A stretch of 64,000 nt of DNA from IMGVR_UViG_3300044680_000280:1-64000, one strand, 5' to 3'. Counted from the stretch's first letter, positions 9,370-45,323 are shown. Numbers and translations are program-made. The notes: a model not told the origin generated them from the sequence alone.

Positions 9370-10104
9370 CTATCCGTGGAGTTTCTGAAACCGACTCGCA
9401 ACCTTCACGGTCAGCGGATCCAAAGAGGCTGTTTTCTCCAGGGTTCCATTGTCGAGGTAGGCGGCTTCCATTCCCGGATCAAGGCAATTAAATCGGATCA
9501 TGTCGGCCTCGAGTCCTACCTCTTCCGCAGTGGCTTCGAGTGCCTTGAGGAACTCCCCTTGAAGGAGCTTCGTTCTTGATCGTTTTTGCCTTGGGAGTTC
9601 GGGACCCTCAGATCGAACCTGAGACAACTTGGAAGACATGATTCTATTGGCGTTGAACCCTCGGATATCACTCATATTGAGCTTGAATCCGCCCAGGTAT
9701 TCGTTCACCATGTCCGCCGTCACGCGACCCGTGTCGTGTGCAAAGAGCTCGTCGTCCACATCCTCGACCGCTTCGTAGGCATCCGCCAAAGCTCTGACGA
9801 TCGATGCGTTGGTGATGGGCTTGCGTTTCCCCTTGGCTCGGAAGTACGCCTCTCGATCATCGAGCTGGACGTTCTTCTTCCGCCAAGAGAAGACGGGGTC
9901 CTCGCTCGTCTCAGCCATGAGTCCGACCGCCAACGCGGTGAGAAAACGATTGGGATCGCTCGAGCGTAGGTCTCGCTTGACTTTGGCTTGAAGCGCTTCC
10001 ATGGAGGATCGGACACGGCTCAGTCGTCGACTGCGAGACCGAAGCTGTCGCTCCTCACTGACAAGCCCTTTCGACCGGGCGCGGGCAACAACAAGGAACC
10101 TCAT
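9370..10104 (-). CDS. type IB topoisomerase-like protein, catalytically degenerate
   Basis: KVKRDLRSSDP...TALAVGLM, VTADMVNEYLGGF, SDIRGFNAN and LEATAEEVG resemble the Topo IB core; the catalytic His/Tyr positions read L/C. Confidence 0.6.
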   Translation of the reverse strand: MRFLVVARARSKGLVSEERQLRSRSRRLSRVRSSMEALQAKVKRDLRSSDPNRFLTALAVGLMAETSEDPVFSWRKKNVQLDDREAYFRAKGKRKPITNASIVRALADAYEAVEDVDDELFAHDTGRVTADMVNEYLGGFKLNMSDIRGFNANRIMSSKLSQVRSEGPELPRQKRSRTKLLQGEFLKALEATAEEVGLEADMIRFNCLDPGMEAAYLDNGTLEKTASLDPLTVKVASRFQKLHG

Positions 10105-11495
10105 TCGGGCTCTTCTGTGGGTACGGGTTCAGGCGCCTCGGGAGCTTTACCCGTCTTGACAACACTCTTGAGCCACTCGGACGGTTCTGGTTTTAGATGA
10201 CCAAGAATGTAGGTGGTCATCATCTCTGCAAAATACTCCATGTGGTTCTTACGGGCATAGTTCGTGGGGACCCAATCATGTAGATGGGTTTTGTAGTCAC
10301 TCCGTCCTTCGCCACTCTTTATGAGGGAGGACAACTCTACGTAAACCGTATGCCTTTCTTCCTCAACCTTTTTGAGTTCCGCCTCTTTGGCTTCGTCTTT
10401 ACCAGCATAGGTAAGGGAATCGACGGATTCAGGCACAATTAAGGGTCCAGGGCCTCGTCGGTAGATTTGCTGACGCTTGATATAAGCCTCTGGGGCGTCA
10501 ATGACCTCCACGTTGACAGTGCGACTATCCGCCTTACCAACGATGCGACCCTTCACATGGTACTGCACACCATTGACCCACGTATCGTATTCAAATACCT
10601 GTCCCTTGCGTGGCAATGGCTTTCGCTTGTTTTGCTCCTCACTCAGTCGGGAATACGCTTCATTCAGAGCCTTCATTTTTCGGTTCAGAATGTCAACCTT
10701 GTTGCTTTTACCGGTCGACTTCTGACGAACAGCCCACATGTGCTTACTGATGATTGCTGAGTTATTAATTCCACCTGGCACCACCTTATCGTGGCAGTAG
10801 TGTCCAAGCTCATGAATGACCGTATGGATAAGTTTAGGATCCTCGTAGGACTTCGGTGCAAACTGAATGGTAGGAGGCACACTACCCATTGTGTAAAGTG
10901 CGCCGGCATGGGAAGCACCTCGCCCGCTTAGTACAGACGAAATATCGTGAACGATGGGGACACCAGCAGCGGCGTACATACGCTCCGCTTCCTCGAGCAA
11001 AGCACCCAGCTTGTCCACGTGTTCTTCGTGCTGCTTCAGATAAATCACCTTGAATCGACCAAACTTCTTCTCGAGAACTACGGACGCCGCATAGCGCTCA
11101 ACGACTCGTTCGGCAGCCGTCTTCTTCTCTTCTTCTTCGGGGTCGGGCGGGTCGGGGTCGTGCCAGATCTTGTAGAGACCCATGATCTTGTTCTTTTTGC
11201 GGCCTTGTGGGACTGGACGAATCTCAATCATCGGGTGTCCACGATCATCGGCCCAAATGCGCTCGATGATGCCGTGCTTGTTCTTGTACTTCCCGAATAC
11301 AATTTCGTCCCCGGGGGCGAAGAACCCCCTGGCGATCAAAACTCGTGCGGCAACTCTGGCTGAGATTGCGTCGGTCGGAGCGACGTCGTCGTAGATTACG
11401 TCCTCAAGACCGTCCTCCCCCGAGCATGCGCTCATGGGTTGGCTACGGCACCACTCGAGGGCGGCGATGCCCCACTCAGGATCAATATCGTTCAT
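10101..11495 (-). CDS. multidomain protein: small beta-barrel module plus HExxH metallopeptidase
   Basis: VIHELGHYCH and NYARKNHMEYFAE; internal motifs RVAARVLIA and KKTAAERVVERYAAS; ATG 11495 overlaps the upstream stop. Confidence 0.7.
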   Translation of the reverse strand: MNDIDPEWGIAALEWCRSQPMSACSGEDGLEDVIYDDVAPTDAISARVAARVLIARGFFAPGDEIVFGKYKNKHGIIERIWADDRGHPMIEIRPVPQGRKKNKIMGLYKIWHDPDPPDPEEEEKKTAAERVVERYAASVVLEKKFGRFKVIYLKQHEEHVDKLGALLEEAERMYAAAGVPIVHDISSVLSGRGASHAGALYTMGSVPPTIQFAPKSYEDPKLIHTVIHELGHYCHDKVVPGGINNSAIISKHMWAVRQKSTGKSNKVDILNRKMKALNEAYSRLSEEQNKRKPLPRKGQVFEYDTWVNGVQYHVKGRIVGKADSRTVNVEVIDAPEAYIKRQQIYRRGPGPLIVPESVDSLTYAGKDEAKEAELKKVEEERHTVYVELSSLIKSGEGRSDYKTHLHDWVPTNYARKNHMEYFAEMMTTYILGHLKPEPSEWLKSVVKTGKAPEAPEPVPTEEPE

Positions 11496-12913
11496 CCTTG
11501 ATTCCATAGGGTGGTGGCTTCAGCACAATCGACATCAGGACAGAGATAAATGGCGTAGGCTGCCAAATCGTGAAGCCAGAACTTGCCCTCATCATGATTG
11601 TCGTACAGGTGGCACACAGCATCCCCGCCCGGCTTCTCCTTGATGGTAATAGCTAGCCTGGCATCCTTACCACATTTGAAGCACTTCGTAGTGGGGTCAA
11701 ACTCGGCCTGGTACGTCAGCCCCGTACCAGCGGGACCGTACCCGACATCCAAACCGCCATGCTCGGCGGCATAGCGGGCAGCAACTTTGAGGGTGAGCTT
11801 ACTCATAGTGGCTTTCTTTCGGATCAAGATGCGGTCACCACCACTATTCATCAATGCAATTTCAGGGTCCCCAAGACGGTTGGGGTGTTGGGCATAAAGA
11901 GAAACGGGGCGGTCTCCAATGATGAGCTTAACAGTAACAGTCCTATCCCCTGTCCGTTGATATACGTCGGCTACGGTAGCGCTCGAGTGAGCTGGAATGT
12001 TTAGTCCCCGAGAACCCTTCTCAACGAGCACACGATCTCTAGGCTTGAGAGAGAAGTCACCACGAATCTTGTTTGGGTCCTCATCCTGCTCAAAATGCTT
12101 TTCGTACTTTTTCTTTCGGAGTAGGATTTGGTAGGAGGTGGGCACGGGTTTCCCTGGCCGCAGGCGAATTCCAATCTTAGCTGTTTCGATCGCATCGTCC
12201 TTCGTCGGGGCGTCATTGACTATGACTCGATCATCATTGAGAATGACCTGCCACTTACCATCGGTCAGCCAAACCCGCACATCATGATCCAGAATGGAGC
12301 CCTGGTATAATTGCGGATTTATTTCTCGCAGGTCCACATCCTTCTTGGGTCGCTTCTCAACGTAATTTCTAGCCTCTTCCGTAGAGATTGGGTCCATCTG
12401 ATGATTTGAGTGCACGACGAATAGGTCGACATCCTCAAGTCCGACAATCATCGAGCACCCTAGTCCAAAACAGCAAGCGGAGTCTTCCATGACCCCGGAT
12501 TGATGAGGTGGCCCGTTCGGGTCAAAGGGCACCTTTGGATTCAAATGGTGAAATCGGACGCCCATTGCGTCCAAACGAGCGAGGAAGAGATCGTCTCCGT
12601 ACCGTTTTCCCCTGAGTTTATTCCCTATTTCAATGACTTCCGTGATGTTGTGCCCCCAAGACGCTCCGTGAGTTCGTTCCGCCTTGGCTGAGTAAGTCCC
12701 GCCCGTAATCCTTCCCGTTCGCAGAATACGACTCAACTCCTCCCCATCAAAAATGCGATACATTTTCACCGGAGACTCAAACGTACCGACGATTTGATCT
12801 GTCATCGATGGGAATTGCTGACGAGCTTTATTCGTGGCGTCACGATCTATCGTAATTTTGATAGCATTCGCTGACTTCCACCTGCTCAAAACTCGAAATT
12901 CGATGCGATCCAC
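11492..12913 (-). CDS. multidomain hypothetical protein with RV-x-x-R leader and C-terminal Cys-rich module
   Basis: Probable GTG start 12913 (MDRIEFRVLSRWKSA); internal MSKLTLKVAARYAA; C-terminal CFKC...CPDVDC. Confidence 0.65.
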   Translation of the reverse strand: MDRIEFRVLSRWKSANAIKITIDRDATNKARQQFPSMTDQIVGTFESPVKMYRIFDGEELSRILRTGRITGGTYSAKAERTHGASWGHNITEVIEIGNKLRGKRYGDDLFLARLDAMGVRFHHLNPKVPFDPNGPPHQSGVMEDSACCFGLGCSMIVGLEDVDLFVVHSNHQMDPISTEEARNYVEKRPKKDVDLREINPQLYQGSILDHDVRVWLTDGKWQVILNDDRVIVNDAPTKDDAIETAKIGIRLRPGKPVPTSYQILLRKKKYEKHFEQDEDPNKIRGDFSLKPRDRVLVEKGSRGLNIPAHSSATVADVYQRTGDRTVTVKLIIGDRPVSLYAQHPNRLGDPEIALMNSGGDRILIRKKATMSKLTLKVAARYAAEHGGLDVGYGPAGTGLTYQAEFDPTTKCFKCGKDARLAITIKEKPGGDAVCHLYDNHDEGKFWLHDLAAYAIYLCPDVDCAEATTLWNQG

Positions 12914-12924
12914 ACCTACCCAAC

Positions 12925-16238: not shown

Positions 16239-16248
16239 ACCCCCTATC

Positions 16249-16255
16249 TACACCG
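16249..16255 (-). promoter_or_regulatory. CGGTGTA upstream element
   Basis: 10 nt before ATG 16238. Confidence 0.6.
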
Positions 16256-17610: not shown

Positions 17611-17895
17611 TCAAGAGGGCTTGCCCCCGGCTTTGGACACCATCCTCGCTTGAACGGCGTCGGCGATACGTTCAGCCTGACTTACACCAGCAGCTCGTAG
17701 GTAAAGCTGCAACATTCCCTTGTAGAGCTGAGATCCCTGCACTTTGCTCGTAACGATCTTCCAACAGGCCTTGCAGTAGGTCGTTGTGTCGGGCGCAGGT
17801 TTACCAGTAGCTGAAGCAACCAGCAACTTCTCCTCAGACGTAAGAGTGAGGGTTTGGAAAGCTTCCTTGTCCCGGTGGCAAACGCAGCACTTCAT
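17611..17895 (-). CDS. small zinc-binding hypothetical protein
   Basis: CCVC...CKAC. Confidence 0.6.
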   Translation of the reverse strand: MKCCVCHRDKEAFQTLTLTSEEKLLVASATGKPAPDTTTYCKACWKIVTSKVQGSQLYKGMLQLYLRAAGVSQAERIADAVQARMVSKAGGKPS

Positions 17896-18524
17896 GTGTT
17901 TTCAACGTAGTCTTTAAAGATGGCCATGTCTGCCCCGTCCAAGTCATATTCCCCGTTGGATATCTTTTCCCCCACGAGAACCGCCACACTGAGGGGCATG
18001 ATGATGGTCGTGATTCCGTGCTTGCGTATCGCACGATTCACTCGACTGTGAAACTCCTCGGTCACATCCCTTTTATTGACGATTTCTGACTCAAGAATTC
18101 GATGGGGATGGCAATTGTAGGGATCCCCCGTGGAGTACGTAACTCGACATTGAAAAGGCCGTGCATTGTAAACCGTGCATTTCTTAGTCCCCTCATCGAG
18201 CAAGGGGCACGGAATCATACTGAGCAGCCAAACTTCGTAGGACGCATCCCTCACCTTGCTCGCGTGTTCCTCAAAGGTAGCCTTTAGGCTGGGCGTCCAG
18301 CGTCCCCTGGATACGAGGTTTTTATATAGAAGCATGCCCTCGACCACGGTCAAATGGACGGGGTGGTAGCAGCAATTCGAACACCCAGAACGACAAGACA
18401 CAGTGAGGCCCTCGTCGTGAGCCGTGTTGCGTACTAACGCCTCAAAGTTGGATGCTACCTCAATCTCGGCCGAATACACTTGAGAAAGACTGATCTCAGC
18501 AATGACTGGGAGTTTGCGGGACAT
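17892..18524 (-). CDS. YkgJ/FliB-like Cys-cluster (Fe-S or Zn) protein
   Basis: CRSGCSNCC...CPLLD...CTVYNARPFQCR. Confidence 0.8.
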   Translation of the reverse strand: MSRKLPVIAEISLSQVYSAEIEVASNFEALVRNTAHDEGLTVSCRSGCSNCCYHPVHLTVVEGMLLYKNLVSRGRWTPSLKATFEEHASKVRDASYEVWLLSMIPCPLLDEGTKKCTVYNARPFQCRVTYSTGDPYNCHPHRILESEIVNKRDVTEEFHSRVNRAIRKHGITTIIMPLSVAVLVGEKISNGEYDLDGADMAIFKDYVENT

Positions 18525-19030
18525 CAGGTATCCTCGTCATCTTTGAGCAAATGATCGAATACCGTTTTCACTTCGGCAACTTTCACCCTACCGAACCTTG
18601 AGGAGGCGGCCCTAATGGAGACGTTCCTGAAGTTCTTTGGCACAATGACGCTCGTGCTGCCCCTCGTGTAAGTAAGAACAATTCGGTCAAGATGCCGCAA
18701 CCTTAGCTTGGGATTCAGGTAGAGAGTTCCGCCGCTCCTCTCAGGTTCACCAAGGAGCCAATCCTGAAAGATTCGAAGCGGTACGGGTGTCTCAAGAAGA
18801 TTTGTAGGATGGGCCACAGAAGTAAGGTCACCCCACTTATAGGAGCGATGGGGCAACACGATAAAGGGCCACTGTTCAAACGGGTTGAACTCAACCTTGT
18901 ACTTTGGATCATCCGATTGGACAATCAACACAGTGTCATCCTTGTCCAAGAGGAGAGTGCTATCGTCCGAGTTGACCTGGACTACGACATACCAGGTCCC
19001 ATCACACGTTACGATGTCACCGCGGTTCAT
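18524..19030 (-). CDS. hypothetical protein
   Basis: Start trimmed to ATG 19030 (TGATG coupling with the upstream gene). Confidence 0.6.
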   Translation of the reverse strand: MNRGDIVTCDGTWYVVVQVNSDDSTLLLDKDDTVLIVQSDDPKYKVEFNPFEQWPFIVLPHRSYKWGDLTSVAHPTNLLETPVPLRIFQDWLLGEPERSGGTLYLNPKLRLRHLDRIVLTYTRGSTSVIVPKNFRNVSIRAASSRFGRVKVAEVKTVFDHLLKDDEDT

Positions 19031-19656
19031 CAGTTGGCCGGAAGAACGCCCGCGTCTCGAAGGATCTCGTCCGTATTGTTGAGCTGGGGAACTCCGTTTC
19101 GCAGCACTTCTGCCGTGGCGGTCGCACGGACACGGTAGTATCCACGACCTTTGGACGGTACCCGCTCGAAGGTCTCGCTGAATGAGGAAAGCAGATACGC
19201 AATGTACGCTCTCGGATTGCTCGAATTGGGAAGCCAATCTCGAACCTTCAGGTCCTCGTAGATACTGAGGGCGTTCATAATGTTCGTCCCCATTACCGTA
19301 ACCATGGCGTCGCGAATCTTCGGACGCCTTCCGTCCGCCACTTCACGGCGACCAACGGCGGCTCGATTGTTATTCGGGGGCTTGGAAGGCTTTGAGGAGG
19401 GGGCCGAGACTGTACGAGCGGTTGGAACAGCCTCGCTAACGACGGGCCGCCTAGAGGGCTCTGGCTCTGTACCGAAGATCGAATCGAACTTCTCAATCTT
19501 CAATCTAAGATGGTCCAGTTGGGCTGACTCATCCGCATATAGGGCGTCCAGCTCATCCTTTTGCTTTTGAATCTCCGAGAGCTTGTCCTGATGTCCCTGC
19601 AATTCTCTTTCGAGACGGCTCCGTAGCTCTTCTTCAATTTTGAGGGTTAGGGACAT
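19030..19656 (-). CDS. coiled-coil protein with probable C-terminal winged-helix-like domain
   Basis: N-terminal heptads; IRDAMVTVM...IYEDLKVRDW...FERVPSKGRGYYRV. Confidence 0.6.
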   Translation of the reverse strand: MSLTLKIEEELRSRLERELQGHQDKLSEIQKQKDELDALYADESAQLDHLRLKIEKFDSIFGTEPEPSRRPVVSEAVPTARTVSAPSSKPSKPPNNNRAAVGRREVADGRRPKIRDAMVTVMGTNIMNALSIYEDLKVRDWLPNSSNPRAYIAYLLSSFSETFERVPSKGRGYYRVRATATAEVLRNGVPQLNNTDEILRDAGVLPAN

Positions 19657-19691
19657 ACCACATCTCCATTTTAACTTGGGGGTACACTTAC

Positions 19692-20231
19692 CTATACACC
19701 GCCCAACAGAGTTTGAAGTACCCGAAGATGCCTTTTATCAAGGTTGCCCGCCTTGATATTCGTGAAATTGCAGGCTTTCACCTGGTAACAAGTAGCTTCT
19801 ACCCCCGGTCCAGCCTTCAAACCATCGCAATTTTCACACCTAGATGTCCCGAAGTTCAACCGAAACCTGAATTGGGCCGCCTCATGCTGAACCTCGCGGT
19901 AGTGCCTAATGAGCTCTTCCGCTGCCCTGTATACCCTCGTGGCGTCTCCTGTTTTGAAAGACTCTAATAGGTTTTCGGCTAGGTCTTCTTGGTCGGGAAC
20001 TCCCGTTGAAGGTCCACCGGACAGATGATCCCCTGTCTTCGTAGATACTGTTCGACCCGTCCCTCCGCGTTCGCCGCCATCAGTCCCGACAACCTCGGAT
20101 CCTTCGTCTTCTCGGCGAGATCGATTGCCGACCTCATGAGGCTCTGCCATTCGTCGTGGGTTTTGGCCGCTCGAATGGTGGATTTTTTGCCGGGAAGGGA
20201 CTTCAGACGAGGGCGGTTGACCATGACTCAC
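19692..20231 (-). CDS. Cys-rich hypothetical protein (the 5' half overlaps another ORF in the -1 frame)
   Basis: C-terminal CENC...C...C; the N-terminal half looks off-frame. Confidence 0.4.
   Translation of the reverse strand: MSHGQPPSSEVPSRQKIHHSSGQNPRRMAEPHEVGNRSRREDEGSEVVGTDGGERGGTGRTVSTKTGDHLSGGPSTGVPDQEDLAENLLESFKTGDATRVYRAAEELIRHYREVQHEAAQFRFRLNFGTSRCENCDGLKAGPGVEATCYQVKACNFTNIKAGNLDKRHLRVLQTLLGGV
19695..19701 (-). promoter_or_regulatory. CGGTGTA upstream element
   Basis: 38 nt before ATG 19656; overlaps the upstream TAG. Confidence 0.55.
19979..20224 (-). CDS. hypothetical protein, 81 aa
   Basis: Mostly G/C third codon positions in this frame; helical-looking sequence. Confidence 0.55.
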   Translation of the reverse strand: MVNRPRLKSLPGKKSTIRAAKTHDEWQSLMRSAIDLAEKTKDPRLSGLMAANAEGRVEQYLRRQGIICPVDLQREFPTKKT

Positions 20232-20620
20232 GATTCCTCTTTAGATTGAGCCTCTGCTTGTGCTTTCAGCATGAGACCACGAGAGATAGCATAAAGAGCA
20301 TCGTATTCGAAGCAGTATTGCTTCTCGAGCTCCTGGGCTTCCTCAAGGGGGTCCGATGGTTCGGATTTCGTGTGGTGATTGATAACGAACTTGGGCTTGT
20401 AAGCACCCTTGATCTCCATCACCATTCGCAGAAATACCGCCCGTTGTCGCCGAACCTGGTAGTCGAGATTGTCGAGCTCTTCTAGTACTTGAACGACGGC
20501 AGTTTGCGTGTCATCGATGGCGGGACGAAGACCTTTGAGAGAACCCACGGCCTTTGCGAGCTCGGGTGTCTTTGCGAGCTCCCTTGCTTGAGCTCGTCGC
20601 ATCTTTCTGCCTAAACTCAT
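20228..20620 (-). CDS. coiled-coil hypothetical protein
   Basis: GGAG SD before ATG 20620. Confidence 0.6.
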   Translation of the reverse strand: MSLGRKMRRAQARELAKTPELAKAVGSLKGLRPAIDDTQTAVVQVLEELDNLDYQVRRQRAVFLRMVMEIKGAYKPKFVINHHTKSEPSDPLEEAQELEKQYCFEYDALYAISRGLMLKAQAEAQSKEES

Positions 20621-21344: not shown

Positions 21345-21541
21345 TTTTCCAATACCCGGTCGAAGCAATACTTGAAGCAAGTGTCCCACCCCCCACCATG
21401 AGAGGCGGTAGAATTGCCATTTTTCGTGTACTCAATCGCCTGACGAATGGCCCTCTCCGACTCCCAAACAGCAATCCAACTAAGGGCATCGCTAAGTGTC
21501 GGTTCCCGGCACGCACGAGCGACAGCTTCGTCGATCTTCAT
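21326..21541 (-). CDS. small hypothetical protein
   Basis: ATGA overlap with the DUF1848-like stop; MKIDEAVARAC... Confidence 0.55.
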   Translation of the reverse strand: MKIDEAVARACREPTLSDALSWIAVWESERAIRQAIEYTKNGNSTASHGGGWDTCFKYCFDRVLEKWHSNR

Positions 21542-22371
21542 GGTATCACCACAAGACCCTTCGTGGAGTTCGACTTCTTCGGGGACAAGGACTTGTCCGA
21601 GGCATAACAGTAGCCACAAGATAGGGTGCACGATTCGTTGAAAGTGAACGGGTCGACCATGATGGCACAGCCACATGATTCGGATTGGGGTTTTGGCTCA
21701 CCCTCGCAGGGAACACATACGCCAGCGGATAGATTTTGCTGGGCCCCCAGGCCATCCAGGGAGTCCTTGTAAACGTTGCAGAGGCGAACCCTTATACGGT
21801 AGGCATCCGCAATCTGAGCCAATTCTCGCATGATTTGGAGACATTCCGTGGCGCTTCGGGTCTCTGGAATCATGTCGTTTGGTTGTAAAAAGGACAAATA
21901 GACGGAGTTCGTCTTCCCTGTCATCCGAGAGGCAATGGACTCGAAACGTTGGTACAAGCTTCGAACCGAGCTTAGAATCGGAACGGGCGAGAACCGCCAT
22001 GAAAGGTTCTCTCTGCCCACAAGATCCGAGAGGTTCGAAGCCCACTGCGTCGCGGTTTCGATGTTGGGCGCTCCCCGTTCCACTTCCTCCCAACCCGTAA
22101 TCGTCACGTGAACCTTGACCTTGTAGGCGGACAGTAAAGCGTAATCGGCGACCAAGTTCTTCGGGACTTTGGTCCAAAAAACCAGGCTGTGCGTTTCTTC
22201 TGGCGCTAAAGACCACCAGTCGGGAACGCCCGTGCGAACGTCGAATGCTTGCATTTTCCCAGAGAGCAGACTCGCCCGAAACCAATCCCATTTAGCTCCC
22301 GGGACATCGGTCCACCGCGAAAGGCTGTAAGGTACAACCTCAGCTCTACCAGAACGAAGAATCGGGGTCAT
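21538..22371 (-). CDS. DUF1848-like (radical-SAM-related) protein
   Basis: SLSRWTDVP, VFWTKVP, WRFSPV, CGC...DPF..NESCTLSCGYCYA. Confidence 0.75.
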   Translation of the reverse strand: MTPILRSGRAEVVPYSLSRWTDVPGAKWDWFRASLLSGKMQAFDVRTGVPDWWSLAPEETHSLVFWTKVPKNLVADYALLSAYKVKVHVTITGWEEVERGAPNIETATQWASNLSDLVGRENLSWRFSPVPILSSVRSLYQRFESIASRMTGKTNSVYLSFLQPNDMIPETRSATECLQIMRELAQIADAYRIRVRLCNVYKDSLDGLGAQQNLSAGVCVPCEGEPKPQSESCGCAIMVDPFTFNESCTLSCGYCYASDKSLSPKKSNSTKGLVVIP

Positions 22372-23249
22372 CCCTCAGAAGATACACCAGCGGCGTCTTC
22401 GAGGGCTTCCCTAATCGTATCCGGATCCAAATCTTTGAGTGCTTTCGCCGAAATGGCGGCGATGAGAGCCTGAAAAACCTCATCCTGAGTGGGGGGCCGG
22501 TCGTCTTTCGACGCGAGGCGCTCCATGAGCTTTGAGACCAGCTCGACCGAGTGGTGACCGATCTCCCCAAACTCGTGTAGAGTGGGTAGGTGCTGTAGGT
22601 GCTTCGTGACCGCTTTGACCGCGATCTTCTTTGCGGTAGAGCTAACGAACGAGCTCATCACGCCCTTCGTGATGGCAACGGCGCCCGCTCCAAGACCGAA
22701 CCCCGCCCCTAAGGCCCCTGAAACTGCCGCAACCGTACAGTGGATGGCCACTTCCCGTATGGCGTGCTTTTGCTTCTTGGAGACTTCCTTGCCGGTCATC
22801 CAAGCATGGATGCCCTCGCCCGCCTCCTTGAACTCCTTGACCTCATGTTTGGCTACATTGTAGGCACTCTCGACGTATTTCATCGGGGCGCTCAGAATCG
22901 ACTTGTGCGCCTTGAGTAGAGTTTCTCGACGATGATCCTCATCATCAACGAATTTTTTGACGGTCGACGGGGTCTTGTGGAGGAACTCCTGGGCCTTCGA
23001 GGACAGACTCTTTGCCAGGTCCTTCCAAGTCAACTTAGGCCCGGCACCGTGTTCGTGCTCATCGTGCTCGACACCGTGACCTCCGTCCGTCTTCTTTTCA
23101 GAAATCTCCCCCGGCTTCTTGACCGTATGATTTTTCGGGTCCGCCTTGGGATGTTCGTGCAGGTAGTCCTTCAGCGCCTTTGGAGTCGGAAACTCGAAGG
23201 CGAGCTGGTAACGAGCCGCCACACGCAGACTCAACACGTCCCTACGCAT
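22368..23249 (-). CDS. hypothetical protein with RVAARY leader
   Basis: MRRDVLSLRVAARYQLA; Gly/Ala hydrophobic segment VAAVSGALGAGFGLGAGAVA. Confidence 0.75.
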   Translation of the reverse strand: MRRDVLSLRVAARYQLAFEFPTPKALKDYLHEHPKADPKNHTVKKPGEISEKKTDGGHGVEHDEHEHGAGPKLTWKDLAKSLSSKAQEFLHKTPSTVKKFVDDEDHRRETLLKAHKSILSAPMKYVESAYNVAKHEVKEFKEAGEGIHAWMTGKEVSKKQKHAIREVAIHCTVAAVSGALGAGFGLGAGAVAITKGVMSSFVSSTAKKIAVKAVTKHLQHLPTLHEFGEIGHHSVELVSKLMERLASKDDRPPTQDEVFQALIAAISAKALKDLDPDTIREALEDAAGVSSEG

Positions 23250-23250: not shown

Positions 23251-24465
23251 TCAGACCTTGGTGTACTTTTTAGCGAAATGCATGAGGTGGTCGTTGACGA
23301 ACTCTTCAGTGTCGATGTTCCTGTAATCGGACGACCACATGGAACGGGCCTCTCCGAAGTTGTTCACCTTAGGGCCGGCCGAGTAGTAAATGGCCTGCGG
23401 CTTGAACCAGAATCGGAAGTCTCCGTGGGGCGACACGGCGTACGGGATTTTCAGGTGATCGGTAACCCTCCAGCCCTTGGCCTTAAGTGATGCGAAAATC
23501 GCGTCCTGAGCCTGCTTGAAGGTCTTCTTTGCTTTGACCCGAGGCTTCTTCTCCCTCAGGGGATACGCGTCTACCTTCGGTCCTGGCTTCAGTCCCACTT
23601 GACGCATATAGTCCAAATTGATGATATCAGGTAGCTCATCGCAAAGGTCGAAGATGTCCTTGAAAACGTTCGTAACCTCGTGAGACTCAGAGGCGACCCG
23701 AGCGAAAAGCTGGCGCTGACCCTGAAGAAGCCTCTCGAGCTCGGTCAGATAGGTGCGAACCGAGTGAAGAGCTTCCTTGACCTCTTCACCCTCGAGCGTG
23801 GTGGCGTGTGAGAATCCTCGTAGCGCATGCCCCTCGATCTCTTTTGCTCGATGTTGCTCTTTGGCGGGAAGGTCGTTGACGAAGGGTTCTAGGCTCATGA
23901 TGAGATCACGAAACGTATCCGTGGCCTGAGGACCGGTCCTAATGTTCCAGGTCTTTGCCTTTTTCCCTTTTTTCTTATCCTCTAGCTGAAGCGTAACAAT
24001 GGCTTGTTTGGCAATCCGCTCGGGATCCATACTATGCTCGTCCCGAAGTTCGCGAAGGTCACCGACAAGACGATAGTACGTCGACGTAAACGAGGCTTCA
24101 CGTCCCATCGCCAATCGCACGGCGGCAACCGCTTCGGGGTCCTTATCGGGGAATCGAGACGAAGCCTCTGGGGCTGGGGGCGACAAATCGTCCGTCTTCA
24201 AGAGCTCGTTTTGGACTTGGTCGGCTTCCTTTTTTCCGCCCGGCTTGTCACCCTTGTTCTTCATCGACCAAGCAAGTGCCCACGGGTTATCGATCTCATC
24301 GTGTTTTTTCATCTTTTTGACGGTATTCTCCCACCCAGGAGGGGCTACCGCGAGGTGTTCGTCAAGAAGCGGATCTTGCGCCATGGGCCCGGGACGGCTG
24401 ATTGACGCCTCTTCCTCTTGAGTTTGGGCGATTCGTTGAGCAACACGAAGAGCTAGCTTGTCCAT
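23251..24465 (-). CDS. modular hypothetical protein with RVAQR leader
   Basis: MDKLALRVAQRIAQ; internal RLAMGREAS, RIAKQA, RVAS. Confidence 0.75.
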   Translation of the reverse strand: MDKLALRVAQRIAQTQEEEASISRPGPMAQDPLLDEHLAVAPPGWENTVKKMKKHDEIDNPWALAWSMKNKGDKPGGKKEADQVQNELLKTDDLSPPAPEASSRFPDKDPEAVAAVRLAMGREASFTSTYYRLVGDLRELRDEHSMDPERIAKQAIVTLQLEDKKKGKKAKTWNIRTGPQATDTFRDLIMSLEPFVNDLPAKEQHRAKEIEGHALRGFSHATTLEGEEVKEALHSVRTYLTELERLLQGQRQLFARVASESHEVTNVFKDIFDLCDELPDIINLDYMRQVGLKPGPKVDAYPLREKKPRVKAKKTFKQAQDAIFASLKAKGWRVTDHLKIPYAVSPHGDFRFWFKPQAIYYSAGPKVNNFGEARSMWSSDYRNIDTEEFVNDHLMHFAKKYTKV

Positions 24466-24493: not shown

Positions 24494-25213
24494 CTAGAGA
24501 AGTAACCCGGCCTCATCCAGAGCCATATACACGGCTTTCAAAATCTTGGCCTTACTTTGAGGGTTCATGTAGTCCCGAACCTTCTTCCAAGTTTCACTGA
24601 GGTCCACGACGGCTTCTACGAATTGGTGAGGTCTCCCCTTGTACTGCTTTCGCAGGAGGTAGCGGTTCGCGATGTCGAGGCATTGCGAAACAATCTGCTG
24701 CATGTACGCCCGCACCTCATGGGCTTGGTTGAAGTATGCGTTGCGCTCTTCTGGGCTCTCCTTAGGGTCCACAATCTCGTGGGGGAGAAAGCGACCTTCG
24801 GCCGCATGGGTTAACTCGTGAATGAGCACCTTGAAAATATCCGCTGAGACTAGGGGCTGATTTTCAGGATCCGCAAAGTCCCCGAATGTTTTCGAGCCGT
24901 TAATGTGCACCCATATTTCTCGTTTGACAACCGAGTACATCCCACCCACGGTAAAGGAAGTCGACTTGCTAAGAGTGCTTTCGAATAGAACCGGAATGGT
25001 GATGAAGTCGCCCCCGATTACCCAGACGCTGGTTTCCTGATTGTCGAAGATTTTGGCATGGCGACCGACAACCTGTTCCGACGGGAAATGAGCCGTGTAT
25101 TTTGTGATGTAGTGGGCTATACGGTCGGAATCTCTCTTAATCGCCCCGTGGTCGAGAGGAATTGGCCGGGCTTGAATAAACCTGGCAGCGACTCGGAGCG
25201 TGAGAACGTCCAC
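24494..25213 (-). CDS. HExxH metallopeptidase-like protein with RVAARF leader
   Basis: GTG start MDVLTLRVAARFIQA; LIHELTHAAE; YFNQAHEVRAY. Confidence 0.7.
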   Translation of the reverse strand: MDVLTLRVAARFIQARPIPLDHGAIKRDSDRIAHYITKYTAHFPSEQVVGRHAKIFDNQETSVWVIGGDFITIPVLFESTLSKSTSFTVGGMYSVVKREIWVHINGSKTFGDFADPENQPLVSADIFKVLIHELTHAAEGRFLPHEIVDPKESPEERNAYFNQAHEVRAYMQQIVSQCLDIANRYLLRKQYKGRPHQFVEAVVDLSETWKKVRDYMNPQSKAKILKAVYMALDEAGLLL

Positions 25214-25236: not shown

Positions 25237-26523
25237 CTAACCGTGAGTCAACAAACGTTCGGTGCGGGTGACGACGGCTTCCCCCCTCGCGCAAATGGAC
25301 TCAGCGGTAATCCGCAATCCGGTCGCATCCCCTTCGCTGGGAAGGTTGTACGCATAAGGTGCGAGGGTCTCCTCCACGATGGATCGCAACGACCGTGCGC
25401 CCGTCGGCCGCTTCTTTGCCTCCCGGCCGATCGCCAACAACGCTTCGTTGTCGAACTCGAGCGCAATGTCATCCATAGCGAACAGGGCCTTGTATTGCTT
25501 CACGATTGCGTTTTCCGGTTCCGTGAGGACTCGAACCATATCCTCCTCGCTAAGCTCGTACGTTGAGGTGAGGATCGGCAGACGCCCTAAAAGCTCTGGG
25601 ATGTAACCGAACTCAAGGACGTCGTCCGGAACAACCGTTCGGTATGCTTCGTCTAAGGAGAGCCTCTTTTTTTCGTTGGATTGGGAACCGAAACCCAGTC
25701 GGGACGCCTTGTTTACACGACGGTCAACGATTTCCTCGATGCCAGCAAAAGACCCAGCAAAGACGAATAAGATGTTCGTTGTGTCGATGACGTCGACATT
25801 GGAGCGAACTGTTCCGTCGGCGCCCACAGTCGTCACGGACGCGTTCTTTCCCATTCCTCGGGTGACGGGCACCTTGCACCCCTCAATGATGCGTAGGAGC
25901 CCCTGCTGGACGCCCTCGCCCGTGATGTCTCGATAACCCGACGCGGAACGCCCGCTCTTGCGAGCTATCTTGTCCGCCTCGTCACAAAGAATGATCCCCC
26001 ACTCGGCGCGGGCCACGTCTCCGCTCGCGTCCTGAATGAGACCCCGAAGCATGTCGTCGGCGTCATCCCCGACGTACCCCTGTTGCGTCAAACGAGAGCA
26101 GTCCTGGACGTAGAACGGAACCTTGAGGAGTCGGCTAATGGCGCGAAACGTTTCGGTCTTGCCGGATCCTGTCGGTCCGAGAACGAGCATGTTCGATTTT
26201 TGGATCGCTACACCCCCGGACTTGAGCATCTTCGATGCTTCGCGCCTCTTGAAGTGGTGGTAAACTGCCGTTGCGACGGTCGTCTTGAGCCGATCCTGGG
26301 AGATGATGTGCCGATCAAGGTACGCCTTGATTTCCTTAGGTTTACCCAGGGCAACCTCGCCCCTCTTTTCCCTCGTGATTTCCTTCAAAAAGATCTCCGA
26401 GGACCCCTTAGCACAATCGGCACAAATGTAGGTGCCTTCCTCTTGTCCCTTGATGAGCCGTCCGTCGGGGACCTCGTTCTTTGCGTGGAGGCAGAAAGAA
26501 CAATGCTGGTCGGTGGTGGGCAT
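25237..26523 (-). CDS. clpX: ATP-dependent Clp protease ATP-binding subunit ClpX
   Basis: C4 zinc finger CSFC...CADC, GPTGSGKT, LTQQGYVGDD, DEADKIARKS, GEGVQQGLL, LGF loop, PELLGRLP, TGARSLRSI. Confidence 0.95.
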   Translation of the reverse strand: MPTTDQHCSFCLHAKNEVPDGRLIKGQEEGTYICADCAKGSSEIFLKEITREKRGEVALGKPKEIKAYLDRHIISQDRLKTTVATAVYHHFKRREASKMLKSGGVAIQKSNMLVLGPTGSGKTETFRAISRLLKVPFYVQDCSRLTQQGYVGDDADDMLRGLIQDASGDVARAEWGIILCDEADKIARKSGRSASGYRDITGEGVQQGLLRIIEGCKVPVTRGMGKNASVTTVGADGTVRSNVDVIDTTNILFVFAGSFAGIEEIVDRRVNKASRLGFGSQSNEKKRLSLDEAYRTVVPDDVLEFGYIPELLGRLPILTSTYELSEEDMVRVLTEPENAIVKQYKALFAMDDIALEFDNEALLAIGREAKKRPTGARSLRSIVEETLAPYAYNLPSEGDATGLRITAESICARGEAVVTRTERLLTHG

Positions 26524-26570: not shown

Positions 26571-26855
26571 TCACTCGATGCCCTCGCCCGCAAGAGCCTT
26601 GCTCTTGATCTCGCTCGCGAGCTGCTTTTTCAGAGCCTCAACCTCCTCCGAAACCATCACTGACTTAGCTAGGTGTTTAGCTCTGTACTCTTCTCCATCC
26701 ATGATGGCCCGAAAGTAAGCCTTGGCGATGATGGTCTCGAAGGAATCGTCGGGGAGTTTGGCAACGAGACGCGCCGCCGCCTGGCGAACCTCGGGTCCGC
26801 TCAGGATGGTGAGCCGCTCGGCAACTCGGGCTGCAACTCGATCGGCGATGCTCAC
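26571..26855 (-). CDS. small protein with RVAARVAER leader
   Basis: GTG 26855 overlaps the nitrilase TGA; MSIADRVAARVAERL. Confidence 0.6.
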   Translation of the reverse strand: MSIADRVAARVAERLTILSGPEVRQAAARLVAKLPDDSFETIIAKAYFRAIMDGEEYRAKHLAKSVMVSEEVEALKKQLASEIKSKALAGEGIE

Positions 26856-27625: not shown

Positions 27626-28584
27626 TTGGAGGCCCACCTTTTTTCCCACCTAGAGTCCCTGTTGCCATCCCTTATCTCTTTGAACGTTTTACCATAGACT
27701 TTTTGGAAACGTCCGACCTCCAGGAACATAGGACCTAACTTTTTTCTCTCTTTCATGTACTCCATTTGGGTCATATGCTGAATAGCATCTCTCAAGGTAG
27801 CTTCATCTACGGGGACCACTCCACGGCGGTGACCATCTCGAATCTCCTGGAATGTCTTGCCGTACAGGTCTACAAACAGCGCAGCCTTTGGAAATTGAAG
27901 ACCCCAATCTCTTTTCTTGACTTCGTACTCATCTACTTTGAGTCCCTGGATGAGATGACGCAGCTCATTCTCGGATGCCCATTCTCCACGCCTAGCCAAA
28001 TGGGGGTACCAACGAACGGCGGACCCTTTCTTACCTAACACACCCATTTGAGTTCGAAGTGTCTGATCATTCCTATGCTTTTCTCTCATGATTGCCGAAT
28101 GTCGCACCCCATGCTGAACCGCTGCTAGTGGGTTCTTTCGATAGTACTCCCTCATAACGAATGATTGGTGTTCTCTTACACTGGGATCGGACAACCGCCT
28201 CTTTTGTGCTTTAGAAATCTTTATTTTGTACGACGAGGTTCGTTCATACCCGGCCTCACCGCCGCTTGTACAGTTGTACCCAACGCCAGAAGTGGTACTG
28301 TTCAACTTCTCCACCCACTTAGATTCCCCTAGGCACAACGCTTCTTGATCGGAGCATTGTTCTAACTCTTCGATCGTAAAGGCACCCGGGCCGTACTTAC
28401 GAATAGCTCGGTGAAAGGGTACTTGAGACCCCCCACGCGAAGCCGCTTTGTGACGGTTCCAACGAGTCTTGAGGGTGCACACTGTCTGTCCAATGTAAAC
28501 CTTCCCGTTCACCGTATTGGTAACCAGGTAGACTACTCCGTAAGGTCGATTGGGTGACACTTCCACTTCCACATCCAGGTACAA
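27610..28584 (-). mobile_element. free-standing GIY-YIG homing endonuclease gene
   Basis: VYLVTNTVNGKVYIGQT, RWNRH, GYNCTSGGE; NUMOD-like KIKISKAQK; duplicated C-terminal YGKTFxEIRDG. Confidence 0.85.
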
Positions 28585-33065: not shown

Positions 33066-34670
33066 TCAAACGATTTTCAGGGCGGCGGGCGGCGGTGCGT
33101 TTTTCCGAGTGGGAGGGGCCGCGTAGCGTGCCCGAATCCCGTCGTCGGCTTTGTCGTCGTAACCGACCCATTCGATGAGTCCTTTGACCTCGTCGACCAT
33201 CGTATTTGCGAGGCGCGGCTTCCGCTCGAGCGTCAAGTGTAGAACGTCGAAGCTGAGAGCTGAAAACTTCTTGTTGAAGCTTTCAGTCATCGCCGCCTTG
33301 ATGGCCTGTTCGATCTCTCGACCGACCATCATGTTAGCGGCTTCCGCCAAAGCGTCAAGATCGAATCGTCGCGGGTCCTGCTTGTTCTTCGCCAAGTGAA
33401 TCTTGAGGATTTCGATGCGATCCTTCTTTGAGGGGAGGTCGAAGAAGAATCGCTCATCCAGTCGGTTGATAAATTCGATGGGCAAAGACGCGAGGGAGTT
33501 CGCCGTCAGAGCGAGGCAGATGGGGGCCGTCGTTTCTTGCAGCCACGTCGAAAGGATACCGATCATACGGCTCGTCGTACCGCTATCGGTGTGATCGCTC
33601 GACTTGCCGCCAGCAAGGCTCTTTTCCGCCTCGTCAATCCAGACGATGCACGGGGAAACCTGCTCGATCATGCGGATAGCCTGGTAAACATTGGCTTCCG
33701 AAGCTCCCTGTTGAGACGAGCGTAGCTTACCCGTTTCGAGTTGGACAACGGGGAGACCCCAGGCAGTGCCCATCGCCTTGACGCTGAGGGACTTACCGCA
33801 ACCCCAGACGCCGACGTTGAGAATTCCCTTTGGCGGGGTAAGGCCGAACTGTTTCCCCTCCGGAGACCACGCGGATGCCGTGCTGACGGCCCAATCCTTG
33901 AATCTCTGAACGCCGCCGAGCTGGTCGAATGTAAAATTGCTCGTGTCGACGTACTGAAGGAGTCCGGTTTGCTTGATCGCACGCTGGCGATAGGTCGTAA
34001 TGATGTGCGGTTCGATTCGAAACCGTTTGGCCGGGTCCGGATCCTTCTTCGTGGTGACAACCGACTGGGAAATGGCGGCTGTGATCTCCCACGAGGTCAT
34101 GCCTCGGAAGATCGAGATGTCGTCGGGAACGGGAACCTTGGTGCTCCCCATCGTCTTGTTGAGGTTGGCACACGTCTCCTGGATGAGGGTTTGAATCTCC
34201 TCGTCGGTCAGTCCCGTATCGTGAACGATCTCCATGTACCGAGAAAGCTTCTCAGGAATCGACCGGCGGGGACCGACGAAGATGAGGACCTTCACCGTAT
34301 GGATATCGTTGTGCAGGCAGTGCACGATGTTGAGGATGCGCCGGGTAACGTGCTCGTCCTTGAAGAGCCGCTCGGGGTCCAGGAAGACGTAGAAGCTCTG
34401 ATCGTTGTGCAGGTCTTCTCTGTAGATGCCTTCGAGAACCGAGTTGATTTCGAGCTTCTCCTTATTTACGGTGTGCTTGTGCGCCTCCCAGTCGGCGATG
34501 ACGTCACTGATCTGGTGGAGACCCGTCGTGAAGTTGTAAACCCACGTTCGGGGAAGCCACTTCTTGTTCACCGTCGTCGATAGGTTCATGAGAAATCGAT
34601 CCTCCTCGTCCGTGACGAAGTAGATCAACCGGGAAAGGGACTTGAGGTGCTTATCGAATTCGGGCGTCAT
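33066..34670 (-). CDS. Ycf46-like AAA+ ATPase
   Basis: Degenerate N-terminal AAA-like region, then GVWGCGKSL, WIDEAEK, TAN...LPIEFINRLDERFFFDLP; start set at ATG 34670. Confidence 0.85.
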   Translation of the reverse strand: MTPEFDKHLKSLSRLIYFVTDEEDRFLMNLSTTVNKKWLPRTWVYNFTTGLHQISDVIADWEAHKHTVNKEKLEINSVLEGIYREDLHNDQSFYVFLDPERLFKDEHVTRRILNIVHCLHNDIHTVKVLIFVGPRRSIPEKLSRYMEIVHDTGLTDEEIQTLIQETCANLNKTMGSTKVPVPDDISIFRGMTSWEITAAISQSVVTTKKDPDPAKRFRIEPHIITTYRQRAIKQTGLLQYVDTSNFTFDQLGGVQRFKDWAVSTASAWSPEGKQFGLTPPKGILNVGVWGCGKSLSVKAMGTAWGLPVVQLETGKLRSSQQGASEANVYQAIRMIEQVSPCIVWIDEAEKSLAGGKSSDHTDSGTTSRMIGILSTWLQETTAPICLALTANSLASLPIEFINRLDERFFFDLPSKKDRIEILKIHLAKNKQDPRRFDLDALAEAANMMVGREIEQAIKAAMTESFNKKFSALSFDVLHLTLERKPRLANTMVDEVKGLIEWVGYDDKADDGIRARYAAPPTRKNAPPPAALKIV

Positions 34671-34680
34671 GAGATACCCA

Positions 34681-34686
34681 TACACC
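34681..34686 (-). promoter_or_regulatory. GGTGTA upstream element
   Basis: 10 nt before ATG 34670. Confidence 0.55.
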
Positions 34687-34726
34687 ACAAAAGCGAAACG
34701 GCGCAGCCTAATTTAGGTGCGCCGCT
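34686..34726 (-). terminator. putative terminator hairpin upstream of the AAA gene
   Basis: cggcgca-g-cctaa-t-ttagg-tgcgccg stem followed by TTTCGCTTTT on the minus strand. Confidence 0.5.
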
Positions 34727-38812: not shown

Positions 38813-39242
38813 CGGTCACCTCTTGAACGATAATTACATACACCCCCTCCCGCCAAAGCTTGATAATATCGTTGCCAAGCTGGCGAACTTTCTCATCCTC
38901 CGAGATCTCGGGCTCGTAACACCAGGGGAGCCTCTTCGCGACAGGAAAACACGTCTTTTTGTCAAAGAAAACGCAGTTTTTCCGTTGGTAACAGCGTGTG
39001 GCCTCTTCTGGCAGTTTTTTGAGGGCCCCCCACGGCGGTAACCCGAGTGTCTTGAACAGAGGGCTGGACCACCCGTAGAGGCAATGATCCATGACCTCTT
39101 GGGACACGACCGTCAGAAGGGAACACACCGATGACCCCTGCAAAGGGCGCCACTCCTCTTCCCAGACGCCGTCGAGCTCGTAGATAAGGAAAAGCTCGAG
39201 CGGTCCCATCTCCGATGTATTGACCCTCAACCGTCTGGACAC
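38802..39242 (-). CDS. hypothetical protein in the replication operon
   Basis: 146 aa with Cys cluster CYQRKNC...TC...WC. Confidence 0.65.
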   Translation of the reverse strand: MSRRLRVNTSEMGPLELFLIYELDGVWEEEWRPLQGSSVCSLLTVVSQEVMDHCLYGWSSPLFKTLGLPPWGALKKLPEEATRCYQRKNCVFFDKKTCFPVAKRLPWCYEPEISEDEKVRQLGNDIIKLWREGVYVIIVQEVTDAG

Positions 39243-42257: not shown

Positions 42258-42266
42258 TAGGACTCC

Positions 42267-43985: not shown

Positions 43986-43996
43986 CGGAAGCCACC

Positions 43997-44003
43997 TACA
44001 CCG
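43997..44003 (-). promoter_or_regulatory. CGGTGTA upstream element
   Basis: 11 nt before the SNF2 ATG. Confidence 0.6.
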
Positions 44004-44009
44004 AGATCG

Positions 44010-45323
44010 TCACCCCAGAACGGGTAAAAGGAGATCCATCTGTTCCTTGGGGAGCTTCCCGATGGCGTAGAAAGACACCATCTCAGCGAAGTTCTCCTCA
44101 GGGCCGCCCCGCTTGGCGTACGAGGTGATGAAGTCCAGAAAACCAGTCGATGCCAATGGCGTCCCTTTTAACTCAAAGAACGTAGTCACGGGCATCGTGT
44201 AGACGCTAATACGCCCGTCTGGACGAGGCGTGGGATCCTGAAGCTTCACGGATTTTCGTCTGAAATCTCGGTCCGTCACCTTGAGTTCTACGCCCTTGTA
44301 TAGAAGGGTGTCTCCCCTCTCAGGATAATCTTTGAAGCTCGGGCCACTGACTTTGGAGTGGACGCTGATCGTATTGTAGATCTTGACGATCTCGCTTTTT
44401 TTGGAAGACAGAAACTTTTCGCAAAGTCGGTGCGTGAGCTCGTGACAGACCACTCGAACCGTGTCCGTAGTCATTTTGGCATCGGCTCGGACGAACATCT
44501 CATCCTTAGAGGGGAGGTAGAACGCAGCGATCCTCTCCCCAGACAGGCGGTTCGTAATAAGGACGTCGCCATAACAGACTTTCCCCAAACCAATCCCTTC
44601 CATTTTGAGGGCGGCTTCCTCACACAGACGAGCCTTCTCTTCCATCAACTTCGTGTCAAACCCACCCGTATTGACCACGACGAAGGGTCCAGCCTTGAAT
44701 CTAGTAACCACGTCCCCCGTATCCGAGTGGCTCTTCCCCGAAGTCAGGGCTTCCATAAATAACTTTTCGTGCTTACGGAAGAGTTCCAGATGCTCCAGAT
44801 AAAGTTCAGTGCGTTCAACGTACATGTCCTCAACTGTCTTACCCCTCGGGAGACGGATGTTTCGGGCCCAAAATTTGGACGCGACCTCGATGGACTTTCG
44901 CAATTTGGGCGAAAGGACCATCTGTTGTAGGATGGCAAGGCAAAGAAGACGTGCGGTGTCCTTCAAACGGTCGAACCCATGCTGCTGCATGTGTATCGAG
45001 ATGGCGGCCCCCTTGTCGCTCCACTGCCTGGAGGATGGGTCACGGCCATCCCTTTGAGCTTGGAGTTGCTCGATTCTTTCACGAACTGCTTTGTAAGCCT
45101 CGTGGCCAGCCTCTGGTTTGAGCTCTTCTCGAGTTTTTACAATCTCAGCATGAAGGCGCAGGTACTCCTTGGCATCGGCTTCTTTCTCTGCGTATTTCGC
45201 CACGCCGATCCTGAAGAGGAGGAGAAGCTCCTTCGGGTCGCCGATGGAGTCCCCACGCTTAGTCCGTTCTGCTACACGGATTGCGAGTTGATATCGCTCG
45301 GCGACTCGAAGCGAAACGTCCAT
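44010..45323 (-). CDS. HExxH metallopeptidase (lethal-factor-like) with doubled RVAER leader
   Basis: MDVSLRVAERYQLAIRVAERTKR; VCHELTHRL; SYAKRGGPEENFAEMV. Confidence 0.75.
   Translation of the reverse strand: MDVSLRVAERYQLAIRVAERTKRGDSIGDPKELLLLFRIGVAKYAEKEADAKEYLRLHAEIVKTREELKPEAGHEAYKAVRERIEQLQAQRDGRDPSSRQWSDKGAAISIHMQQHGFDRLKDTARLLCLAILQQMVLSPKLRKSIEVASKFWARNIRLPRGKTVEDMYVERTELYLEHLELFRKHEKLFMEALTSGKSHSDTGDVVTRFKAGPFVVVNTGGFDTKLMEEKARLCEEAALKMEGIGLGKVCYGDVLITNRLSGERIAAFYLPSKDEMFVRADAKMTTDTVRVVCHELTHRLCEKFLSSKKSEIVKIYNTISVHSKVSGPSFKDYPERGDTLLYKGVELKVTDRDFRRKSVKLQDPTPRPDGRISVYTMPVTTFFELKGTPLASTGFLDFITSYAKRGGPEENFAEMVSFYAIGKLPKEQMDLLLPVLG

Follow-up and report, generated by a model that had tools for sequence, protein, structure and literature searches.

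Within the first 64 kb of the 406,734-bp huge-phage contig IMGVR_UViG_3300044680_000280 from IMG/VR (positions 1-64000, hereafter the window), eight proteins encoded between positions 9370 and 45323 share a short peptide, here called the tag, with the consensus D-x-[LI]-x-L-[RK]-V-A-x-R-[YFW]-x-x-A over approximately 12-15 residues. The tag is best described as a modular docking peptide on unrelated proteins. We estimate, with a probability of roughly 0.5, that its role is to load the tagged proteins into the phage head for delivery into the host, a reading based on the functions of the carriers and on gene context. By kind, the tag is akin to capsid-targeting or encapsulation peptides; neither a published description of such a tag nor its motif strings in any phage context were found in the literature searched.

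A regular-expression scan for [RK]-V-[AVLS]-x-R over a six-frame set of non-overlapping open reading frames (ORFs), chosen greedily and longest first, identified 12 copies in eight minus-strand ORFs of this region and confirmed, in minus-strand ORFs, all ten sites that a first-pass annotation of this DNA had listed. Six ORF starts bear an N-terminal copy (GTG 12913, ATG 23249, ATG 24465, GTG 25213, GTG 26855 and ATG 45323), and at two of these, 26855 and 45323, the tag is a tandem double copy, with second copies at 26828 and 45278. Three copies are internal (11357 and 11108 in ORF 10101-11507, and 11788 in ORF 11492-12913, the latter with an in-frame ATG ahead of it at 11806), and a single copy, at 9405 in ORF 9370-10104, is C-terminal. 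Compared with 300 within-protein shuffles of 62 ORFs, the strict core RVA.R[YFWIVL] was observed 7 times against 0.14 expected (shuffle maximum, 2), five proteins had it inside the first 30 residues against 0.013 expected, and a wider pattern was observed 10 times against 0.30 expected. This enrichment, together with the spread of the tag across a huge-phage clade described below, bears out the short peptide code common to otherwise unrelated proteins that had been claimed. Synonymous codons vary among the copies (CGT/CGA/AGA/AAG, GTG/GTT/GTC, GCN), which indicates that the repeat is selected as a peptide, not as a DNA element; a DNA or RNA element overlapping the gene starts is ruled out by the same differences in codons at synonymous sites. 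The regular expression matched no tag copy in thyA, polA, dnaB, clpX, dam or any other Pfam-identified enzyme of the window, in agreement with the annotated absence of the tag from the metabolic and replication enzymes. The lone additional match, ..EFRVLVRAF.. at 61924 in a tail-fibre-like 1302-aa ORF (60053-63961), lacks the flanking features of the tag and is probably due to chance.

Apart from the tag, the carriers have little in common. BLASTP comparison of carrier against carrier showed no significant similarity outside the tag, with the exception of the C-terminal parts of the products of 44010-45323 and 10101-11507 (E = 0.011). The eight carriers gave no usable match to Pfam, PHROGs or NCBIfam, and PDB sequence searches with four of them gave no match. 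The description of the set as eight unrelated proteins thus needs qualification: most are dissimilar by BLASTP, but three (44010-45323, 10101-11507 and 24494-25213) contain an HExxH motif, and two of these share the weak C-terminal similarity. For the proteases named in the first-pass annotation, the HExxH motifs speak in favor, as do the residues H132, E133, H136 and E166 of 24494-25213, which are invariant across 11 homologues; on the other side, the HExxH carriers fall into no curated peptidase family of Pfam, PHROG or NCBIfam, although a relative of one of them in locus L043 (related loci are denoted by L numbers) has weak Peptidase_Mx matches. In 44010-45323 and 10101-11507, the metallopeptidase feature seen was the HExxH motif. 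A fold search of the PDB with the AlphaFold model of 24494-25213 found no match at E <= 0.001; the model has similarities to uncharacterised proteins of phages, with weaker ones to polyvalent-protein-associated domains and to a Serratia phage BF structural protein. The annotated dead topoisomerase (9370-10104) is confirmed as such by alignment. The protein is 36% identical (E about 1e-40) to the PF01028-positive proteins of L055 and L076, its own Pfam score being below threshold, and it has lost the catalytic Tyr (active-site SQYL replaced by FNCL) and His (VGHEAS replaced by VGLEAD), while the GHFGVTGW/KSGVKH segment that holds the catalytic Lys is deleted. Across the topoisomerase IB family, the C-terminus keeps a helix of the type V[AV]S[RA][FW].

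The tag is not confined to this genome region. Back-translated tag patterns were scanned over IMG/VR. Among the matches listed for the first collection-wide DNA pattern, LRVAARY, many were chance or unrelated (e.g., a terminase-like C-terminal motif), and a stricter pattern gave 28 loci, most of them true. In-frame, mostly N-terminal copies are present on IMG/VR contigs of 35-512 kb; at the relative loci added later, the tags were read by eye. The carriers on these contigs include intact type IB topoisomerases, a DRAT-like ADP-ribosyltransferase, a Peptidase_Mx-like homologue of 44010-45323, 2H phosphoesterases with weak similarity to Acb1, a fusion of a 2H phosphoesterase with a PolyA_pol nucleotidyltransferase, a conserved 135-aa protein, and an HNH-like protein that is tagged C-terminally. 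A locus of the window's own phage, outside the window, contributes three further carriers, including a fourth HExxH family. The tag is retained on orthologues down to about 30% identity and is present on different Pfam families.

The sequence of the tag differs between lineages in a concerted manner. The carriers in the window have the variant RVAARY/F. In LR745208.1, a 485-kb uncultured phage that has many genes in common with the window, the variant RVAxR[FYIM]LxA occurs at about nine sites, and a 14-column profile derived from 32 tag instances yields weak matches in this genome, given the shifted variant of the lineage. On the 116-kb contig L163, the variant [RH][VI]LxR[YH]LxA opens four consecutive genes, which encode two HExxH proteins, a DUF5662 protein and a topoisomerase IB. 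The tag shifts jointly on all carriers of a genome, and this concerted change of a peptide on unrelated proteins points to a single shared binding partner.

The modularity of the tag is evident from its position: most copies are N-terminal, while others are C-terminal (9405 in the window, L153), inter-domain (11788 in the window, L074, L048, LR745208) or tandem. Within the topoisomerase IB family alone, the tag is N-terminal in L055, L076, L156 and L163; the homologue from the window has it at the C-terminus only; in LR745208, it lies between a HAD-like domain and the topoisomerase domain, with a second copy at the C-terminus. The 2H-phosphoesterase proteins have the order tag-2H-tag-second domain. 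In the 24494-25213 family, 6 of 11 members keep the tag, which is diverged or lost in the others, and in one homologue an insertion of about 70 residues separates the tag from the start of the invariant domain. The AlphaFold model of 24494-25213 (overall predicted local distance difference test score [pLDDT] 85.6, predicted template modelling score 0.83) places residues 3-13 in a helix (pLDDT about 51-68) and residues 14-21 in a coil, ahead of a confidently predicted domain. This is the picture of a tethered helix that, in the model, is not packed on its own protein. A terminal amphipathic helix followed by a flexible linker of varying length, as seen in the model and in the alignment, is a feature that the tag has in common with encapsulation peptides. 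Because C-terminal and inter-domain copies exist, a docking peptide that is retained in the protein fits better than an N-terminal leader.

We propose that the docking peptide is an amphipathic helix, tied by a flexible linker to globular domains of many unrelated families, and that it would recruit the carriers to one common, phage-specified receptor, most likely the inside surface of the capsid or a part of the head under assembly, such as its scaffold or core. In this way, the carriers would end up inside the prohead and enter the host together with the DNA, in the manner of the T4 internal proteins and Alt. The single receptor, its location in the head and the injection of the carriers are what we infer from several lines of evidence. 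Head loading is favored indirectly by the effector-type carriers (HExxH peptidases, ADP-ribosyltransferase, 2H phosphoesterase, topoisomerase IB), by the presence of a tagged topoisomerase in the terminase-portal-protease module of two divergent lineages, and by tag-bearing proteins encoded between the portal and the protease in L204 and in the window's phage.

The arrangement of these modules is as follows. On the 70-kb contig L157, the start of the tagged topoisomerase gene overlaps the TerL stop, the tagged 135-aa gene is located two genes upstream of TerL, and the portal, the head-maturation (prohead) protease and a Q-rich scaffold-like gene follow the topoisomerase. A Q-rich scaffold-like protein is also encoded in L249, at 18844-20268. 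In LR745208, the interval between portal and protease holds the tagged topoisomerase. The corresponding interval of L204, which is the closest relative that differs in sequence, encodes one protein of 205 aa with ..IAERVASRFAAE.. and another of 1347 aa with ..IRVAERAKAA... The head module of the window's phage lies at 165-187 kb of the contig, where a 1293-aa counterpart with RVVNRW and RVAERAK motifs follows the portal. Such a protein of approximately 1300 aa, of low complexity and rich in Lys, Glu and Pro, is encoded immediately after the portal in L249 (11870-15751) as well as in L204 (11666-15709); only its C-terminal part is conserved with a 358-aa protein of L157, and a role in the prohead, as a core or internal protein, is possible for it. 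The portal-protease interval also encodes a 133-aa family, with a member at 15801-16202 of L249, that opens with a tag-like helix (..ETILTRLDGLA.., ..SKVLSRLDRIA..). This family was considered as the ancestral carrier, but the match is too loose for such a claim.

Searches with the portal bring together more than 100 IMG/VR contigs, the longest of 529 kb, in a clade that includes most of the long contigs with the tag. The pattern D-x3-LRVAAR[YF] is found on 24 distinct contigs, of which 12 were also retrieved in the portal searches; judged by size, most of the remaining ones could be fragments. Among cultured phages, those closest by portal are Tunturiibacter phage Tunturi_5 (36% identity), whose host belongs to the Acidobacteriota (PMC11924767), and Bacillus phage G (27%). 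Extending the proposal to this entire clade is tentative, at somewhat less than even odds: the phages would load a large and changeable arsenal of enzymes by means of one evolvable peptide code for co-injection. Under the same reservation, the co-injected arsenal would comprise peptidases, ADP-ribosyltransferases, phosphoesterases of cyclic nucleotides or RNA ends, nucleotidyltransferases, and live as well as dead topoisomerases.

Several observations weigh against head loading. The tagged genes of the window are located more than 100 kb away from the head module of the same phage, are co-oriented and partly translationally coupled with clpX, CN_hydrolase and DUF1848, and share strand and block with thyA and dhfr, in a module that has the look of early or middle genes and not of late ones. 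The evidence from the head modules consists of one family, the topoisomerase IB, and a few tag-like motifs, some of which may belong to the conserved domains of the respective families.

The early-type genes among which the tagged genes of the window are found would suit a different destination, namely a hub outside the virion to which the tag docks proteins, be it a phage compartment or condensate, host RNA polymerase, the ribosome, the nucleoid or the membrane. The modularity of the tag and its co-variation within genomes fit one shared receptor of this kind equally well, and the carriers act on nucleic acids or proteins. A replication compartment, however, would predict tagged DNA polymerase, helicase and primase, all of which are untagged; the strictly conserved R-V-A-x-R-aromatic core argues against plain membrane binding; and a non-virion hub leaves the tagged genes inside head modules unexplained. 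We consider such a hub unlikely, albeit the most probable of the alternatives. The position of clpX amid tagged genes raises another candidate receptor. The phage encodes two AAA+ proteins, ClpX (25237-26523) and a 540-aa AAA protein (33066-34688) that matches phrog_8638, and the tag might be a recognition or tethering signal for ClpX or another AAA+ unfoldase, i.e., a degron or an adaptor motif for the zinc-binding domain, such that the carriers are remodelled, degraded or translocated. The phage ClpX retains its zinc-finger domain, tagged genes lie on both sides of clpX, a tag is present on the gene next downstream of clpX in the window, L003, L005, L009 and L164, and tandem copies would suit a multivalent receptor. 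Moreover, the SspB tail binds the zinc-binding domain of ClpX through a short motif of the Leu-Arg-Val-Val-Lys type, which resembles the core of the tag. The adjacency to clpX, however, is one conserved synteny block (CN_hydrolase - small gene - clpX - peptidase), kept in L003, L009 and L164, which like the window have a zinc-finger ClpX, and does not amount to independent co-occurrence; in L005, the gene after clpX has only diverged tag copies. The two features also come apart: L163 combines a run of four tagged genes with the lack of any ClpX within 10 kb, L007 and L008 have ClpX and no clear tag within 10 kb, and LR745208 keeps about nine tags, yet tblastn with the window ClpX or the second AAA protein found nothing there at E < 1e-5. 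Host ClpX may serve the tagged proteins where phage ClpX is undetected. No ClpP was found among the ORFs of the window scanned with Pfam, and no description of a role for phage ClpX was found in the literature. Taken together, an unfoldase as the receptor appears distinctly improbable; in a mixed model, an unfoldase may help to load the cargo.

The tag could also be a processing signal, cut by the phage HExxH peptidases or the prohead protease, or a regulatory helix that folds back on its own protein. Several HExxH proteins are found among the carriers themselves, x-x-Ala is a frequent end of the motif, and inter-domain copies could mark the junctions of a polyprotein. There is, nevertheless, no conserved residue or spacing after the motif that would define a scissile bond, and the maturation-cleavage part of the original proposal is unsupported, though not refuted, at the level of sequence. 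As to folding back, AlphaFold does not dock the helix (of low pLDDT) on the peptidase domain, and the occurrence of the peptide at either end within the topoisomerase family makes this arrangement unlikely. Processing or fold-back regulation is, in our judgment, very unlikely. Finally, the motif is short and three of the carriers share HExxH, which would be compatible with chance or with common descent of a single N-terminal domain without shared function. Against this stand the about 50-fold enrichment over shuffles, the lack of BLASTP similarity outside the tag for most carriers, and the presence of the tag on different Pfam families, so that this explanation is hardly credible.

Several known systems come close to the tag. 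The capsid-targeting sequence (CTS) of T4 comprises about 10 residues, is confined to the N-terminus, and is cut off after Glu by the prohead protease. T4 Alt is an ADP-ribosyltransferase and as cargo resembles the tagged ADP-ribosyltransferase found here. The T4 internal proteins are diverse defence proteins that share only the CTS, which directs them into the prohead scaffolding core (PMC3012670). A short peptide as the sole similarity among diverse accessory proteins is likewise what BLASTP and Pfam reveal in the present case. Unlike the CTS, the tag is Arg-rich and also occurs in C-terminal, inter-domain and tandem positions; a T4-type Leu/Ile-x-Glu cleavage site was not found, there being no conserved Glu or fixed residue after the tag. 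In the HK97 maturation protease and the P22 scaffolding protein, a terminal helical segment (the tail of the former, the C-terminus of the latter) binds the interior of the HK97-fold procapsid and can carry foreign cargo; each of these tails, in contrast to the tag, belongs to a single assembly protein and is not spread over a dozen or more enzymes. The cargo peptides of encapsulins and microcompartments are short, often amphipathic, joined by a poorly conserved linker to unrelated enzymes in N-terminal, C-terminal or inter-domain position, and bind the shell interior, which in encapsulins has the HK97 fold. They differ from the tag in consensus and in that their shells are cellular organelles whose cargo is not delivered to another cell. 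The SspB-type tether of ClpX is similar to the tag as a short Leu-Arg-Val-type peptide on a flexible tail, next to the zinc-finger clpX in the present case, but the tag is longer, needs an aromatic residue and persists in LR745208 without a ClpX match. MuF-linked polyvalent proteins, in the account of Iyer et al. as cited in PMC7824862, contain effector domains, including ADP-ribosyltransferases, and are thought to be injected with the DNA. As far as that account describes them, they resemble the tagged set in effector repertoire, with the weak similarity of the 24494-25213 model to polyvalent-protein-associated domains as an additional link, and differ in that the domains are fused in one giant protein with a head-associated anchor, whereas here separate enzymes have small tags of their own.

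If head loading is confirmed, the tag would represent a second, independently evolved capsid-targeting system besides that of T4; if the receptor is ClpX or another hub, it would still be a new phage-encoded recruitment system. To our knowledge, most genes of huge phages have no known role and almost none of these phages has been cultured. A tag that is readable from sequence, with at least eight carriers in the window and at least three more elsewhere in the same genome, would provide a testable list of candidates for host takeover and counter-defence. Were the proposal true, sequence by itself could reveal the injected "effectorome" of uncultured huge phages, and the peptide could be used, independently of position, to pack foreign or engineered cargo into large capsids. 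The way in which the tag drifts from lineage to lineage gives a starting point for tracing the receptor through co-variation.

The individual carriers of the window, all on the minus strand, show a range of architectures. The degenerate topoisomerase IB homologue (9370-10104) has its C-terminal copy at 9379-9420 (..DPLTVKVASRFQKL..). The adjacent ORF 10101-11507 encodes a putative zinc metallopeptidase (IHELGH) with two internal tags in its N-terminal third, at 11331-11372 (..AISARVAARVLIA..) and 11082-11123 (..TAAERVVERYAAS..). ORF 11492-12913 encodes a two-part protein without a family match that consists of an N-terminal tag of a weaker variant (VDRIEFRVLSRWKSA, 12869-12913, profile score 11.0), a domain of ~370 aa, a second tag (MSKLTLKVAARYAA, 11762-11806) that follows an in-frame ATG, and a Cys-rich C-terminal domain of ~100 aa. 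The tag at 11806 could reflect either the fusion of two once-separate tagged genes or an internal start for a second product of ~100 aa. The same pattern of an internal tag is seen in the 2H-phosphoesterase ORF of L074 (..MASVRNDRVSALRVAARY..).

The product of 22368-23249, whose homologues in L130, L005 and L003 retain the tag, begins with the copy that has the top profile score (MRRDVLSLRVAARYQLA, 23199-23249, score 19.3) and contains a Gly/Ala-rich hydrophobic stretch (..VAAVSGALGAGFGLGAGAVAIT..). This stretch resembles a glycine-zipper membrane segment, and such segments occur in phage ejection or pore proteins. Directly after the tag, the protein has HPKADPKNH, which is similar to a part of the repeats of a 545-aa protein in L009 (12375-14012); the latter contains three repeats of ~40 residues, each opening with a tag-like VVS(K/R)F, followed by ..GKPADPTKNMSxEDAKKWRE... 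The 404-aa protein encoded by 23251-24465, which has no family or PDB match, starts with the tag (MDKLALRVAQRIAQ, 24421-24465) and continues with an acidic, Pro-rich linker.

The HExxH metallopeptidase-like protein of 24494-25213, with an N-terminal tag that is modelled as a helix (VDVLTLRVAARFIQA, 25169-25213), is encoded directly downstream of clpX. ClpX itself (25237-26523; Pfam AAA_2, zf-C4_ClpX and ClpB_D2-small, including the zinc-finger domain) is untagged and has tagged genes on both sides; it is regarded as genomic context and not as an established component of the tag system. On its other side, ORF 26571-26855 encodes a 94-aa protein with an N-terminal tandem double tag (VSIADRVAARVAERL, 26802-26855), and its start overlaps the stop of the CN_hydrolase gene (26852-27649) as GTGA, i.e., the two genes are translationally coupled. 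The second tandem double tag (MDVSLRVAERYQLAIRVAERTK, 45252-45323) opens the metallopeptidase-like protein (CHELTH) of 44010-45323, which has N-tagged homologues in L043, LR745208 and L163. Outside the 9370-45323 region, ORF 2713-3981 begins with a degenerate copy (MTYSYDRRVAKDI, 3940-3981, with ..DRRVAKDI..), and its homologue in LR745208 opens with the canonical copy MPPQTLVDRYLSLRVAGRYLSA.

The minus strand carries nearly all genes of the window. By Pfam, its ORFs form a replication and nucleotide-metabolism block that includes a dNMP kinase, Dam-type and N6/N4 methylases, a DHH-like protein, DUF1848, CN_hydrolase, a GIY-YIG protein, NT5C, an AAA ATPase, a family A DNA polymerase, a primase zinc finger, a DnaB-like helicase and a SNF2 helicase. 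The interval 46778-63961 is occupied by very large ORFs, including one with a weak tail-fibre match. No deposited phage was matched in a megablast search with 24 kb of the window. The synteny of the DUF1848 (21538-22371) and CxxCxxCC (17892-18524) genes with the tagged cluster is kept in the window, L163 and L164. GIY-YIG homing-endonuclease-like genes lie between conserved neighbours both in the nucleotide-metabolism block of the window (27610-28584) and in the head module of LR745208 (L141, 10114-10974). Huge-phage genomes also contain TnpB/Cas12f-like ORFs, one in L163 (16106-17527) and another in LR745208 (L141, 16400-17683), where it is located between the terminase and portal genes on the opposite strand.

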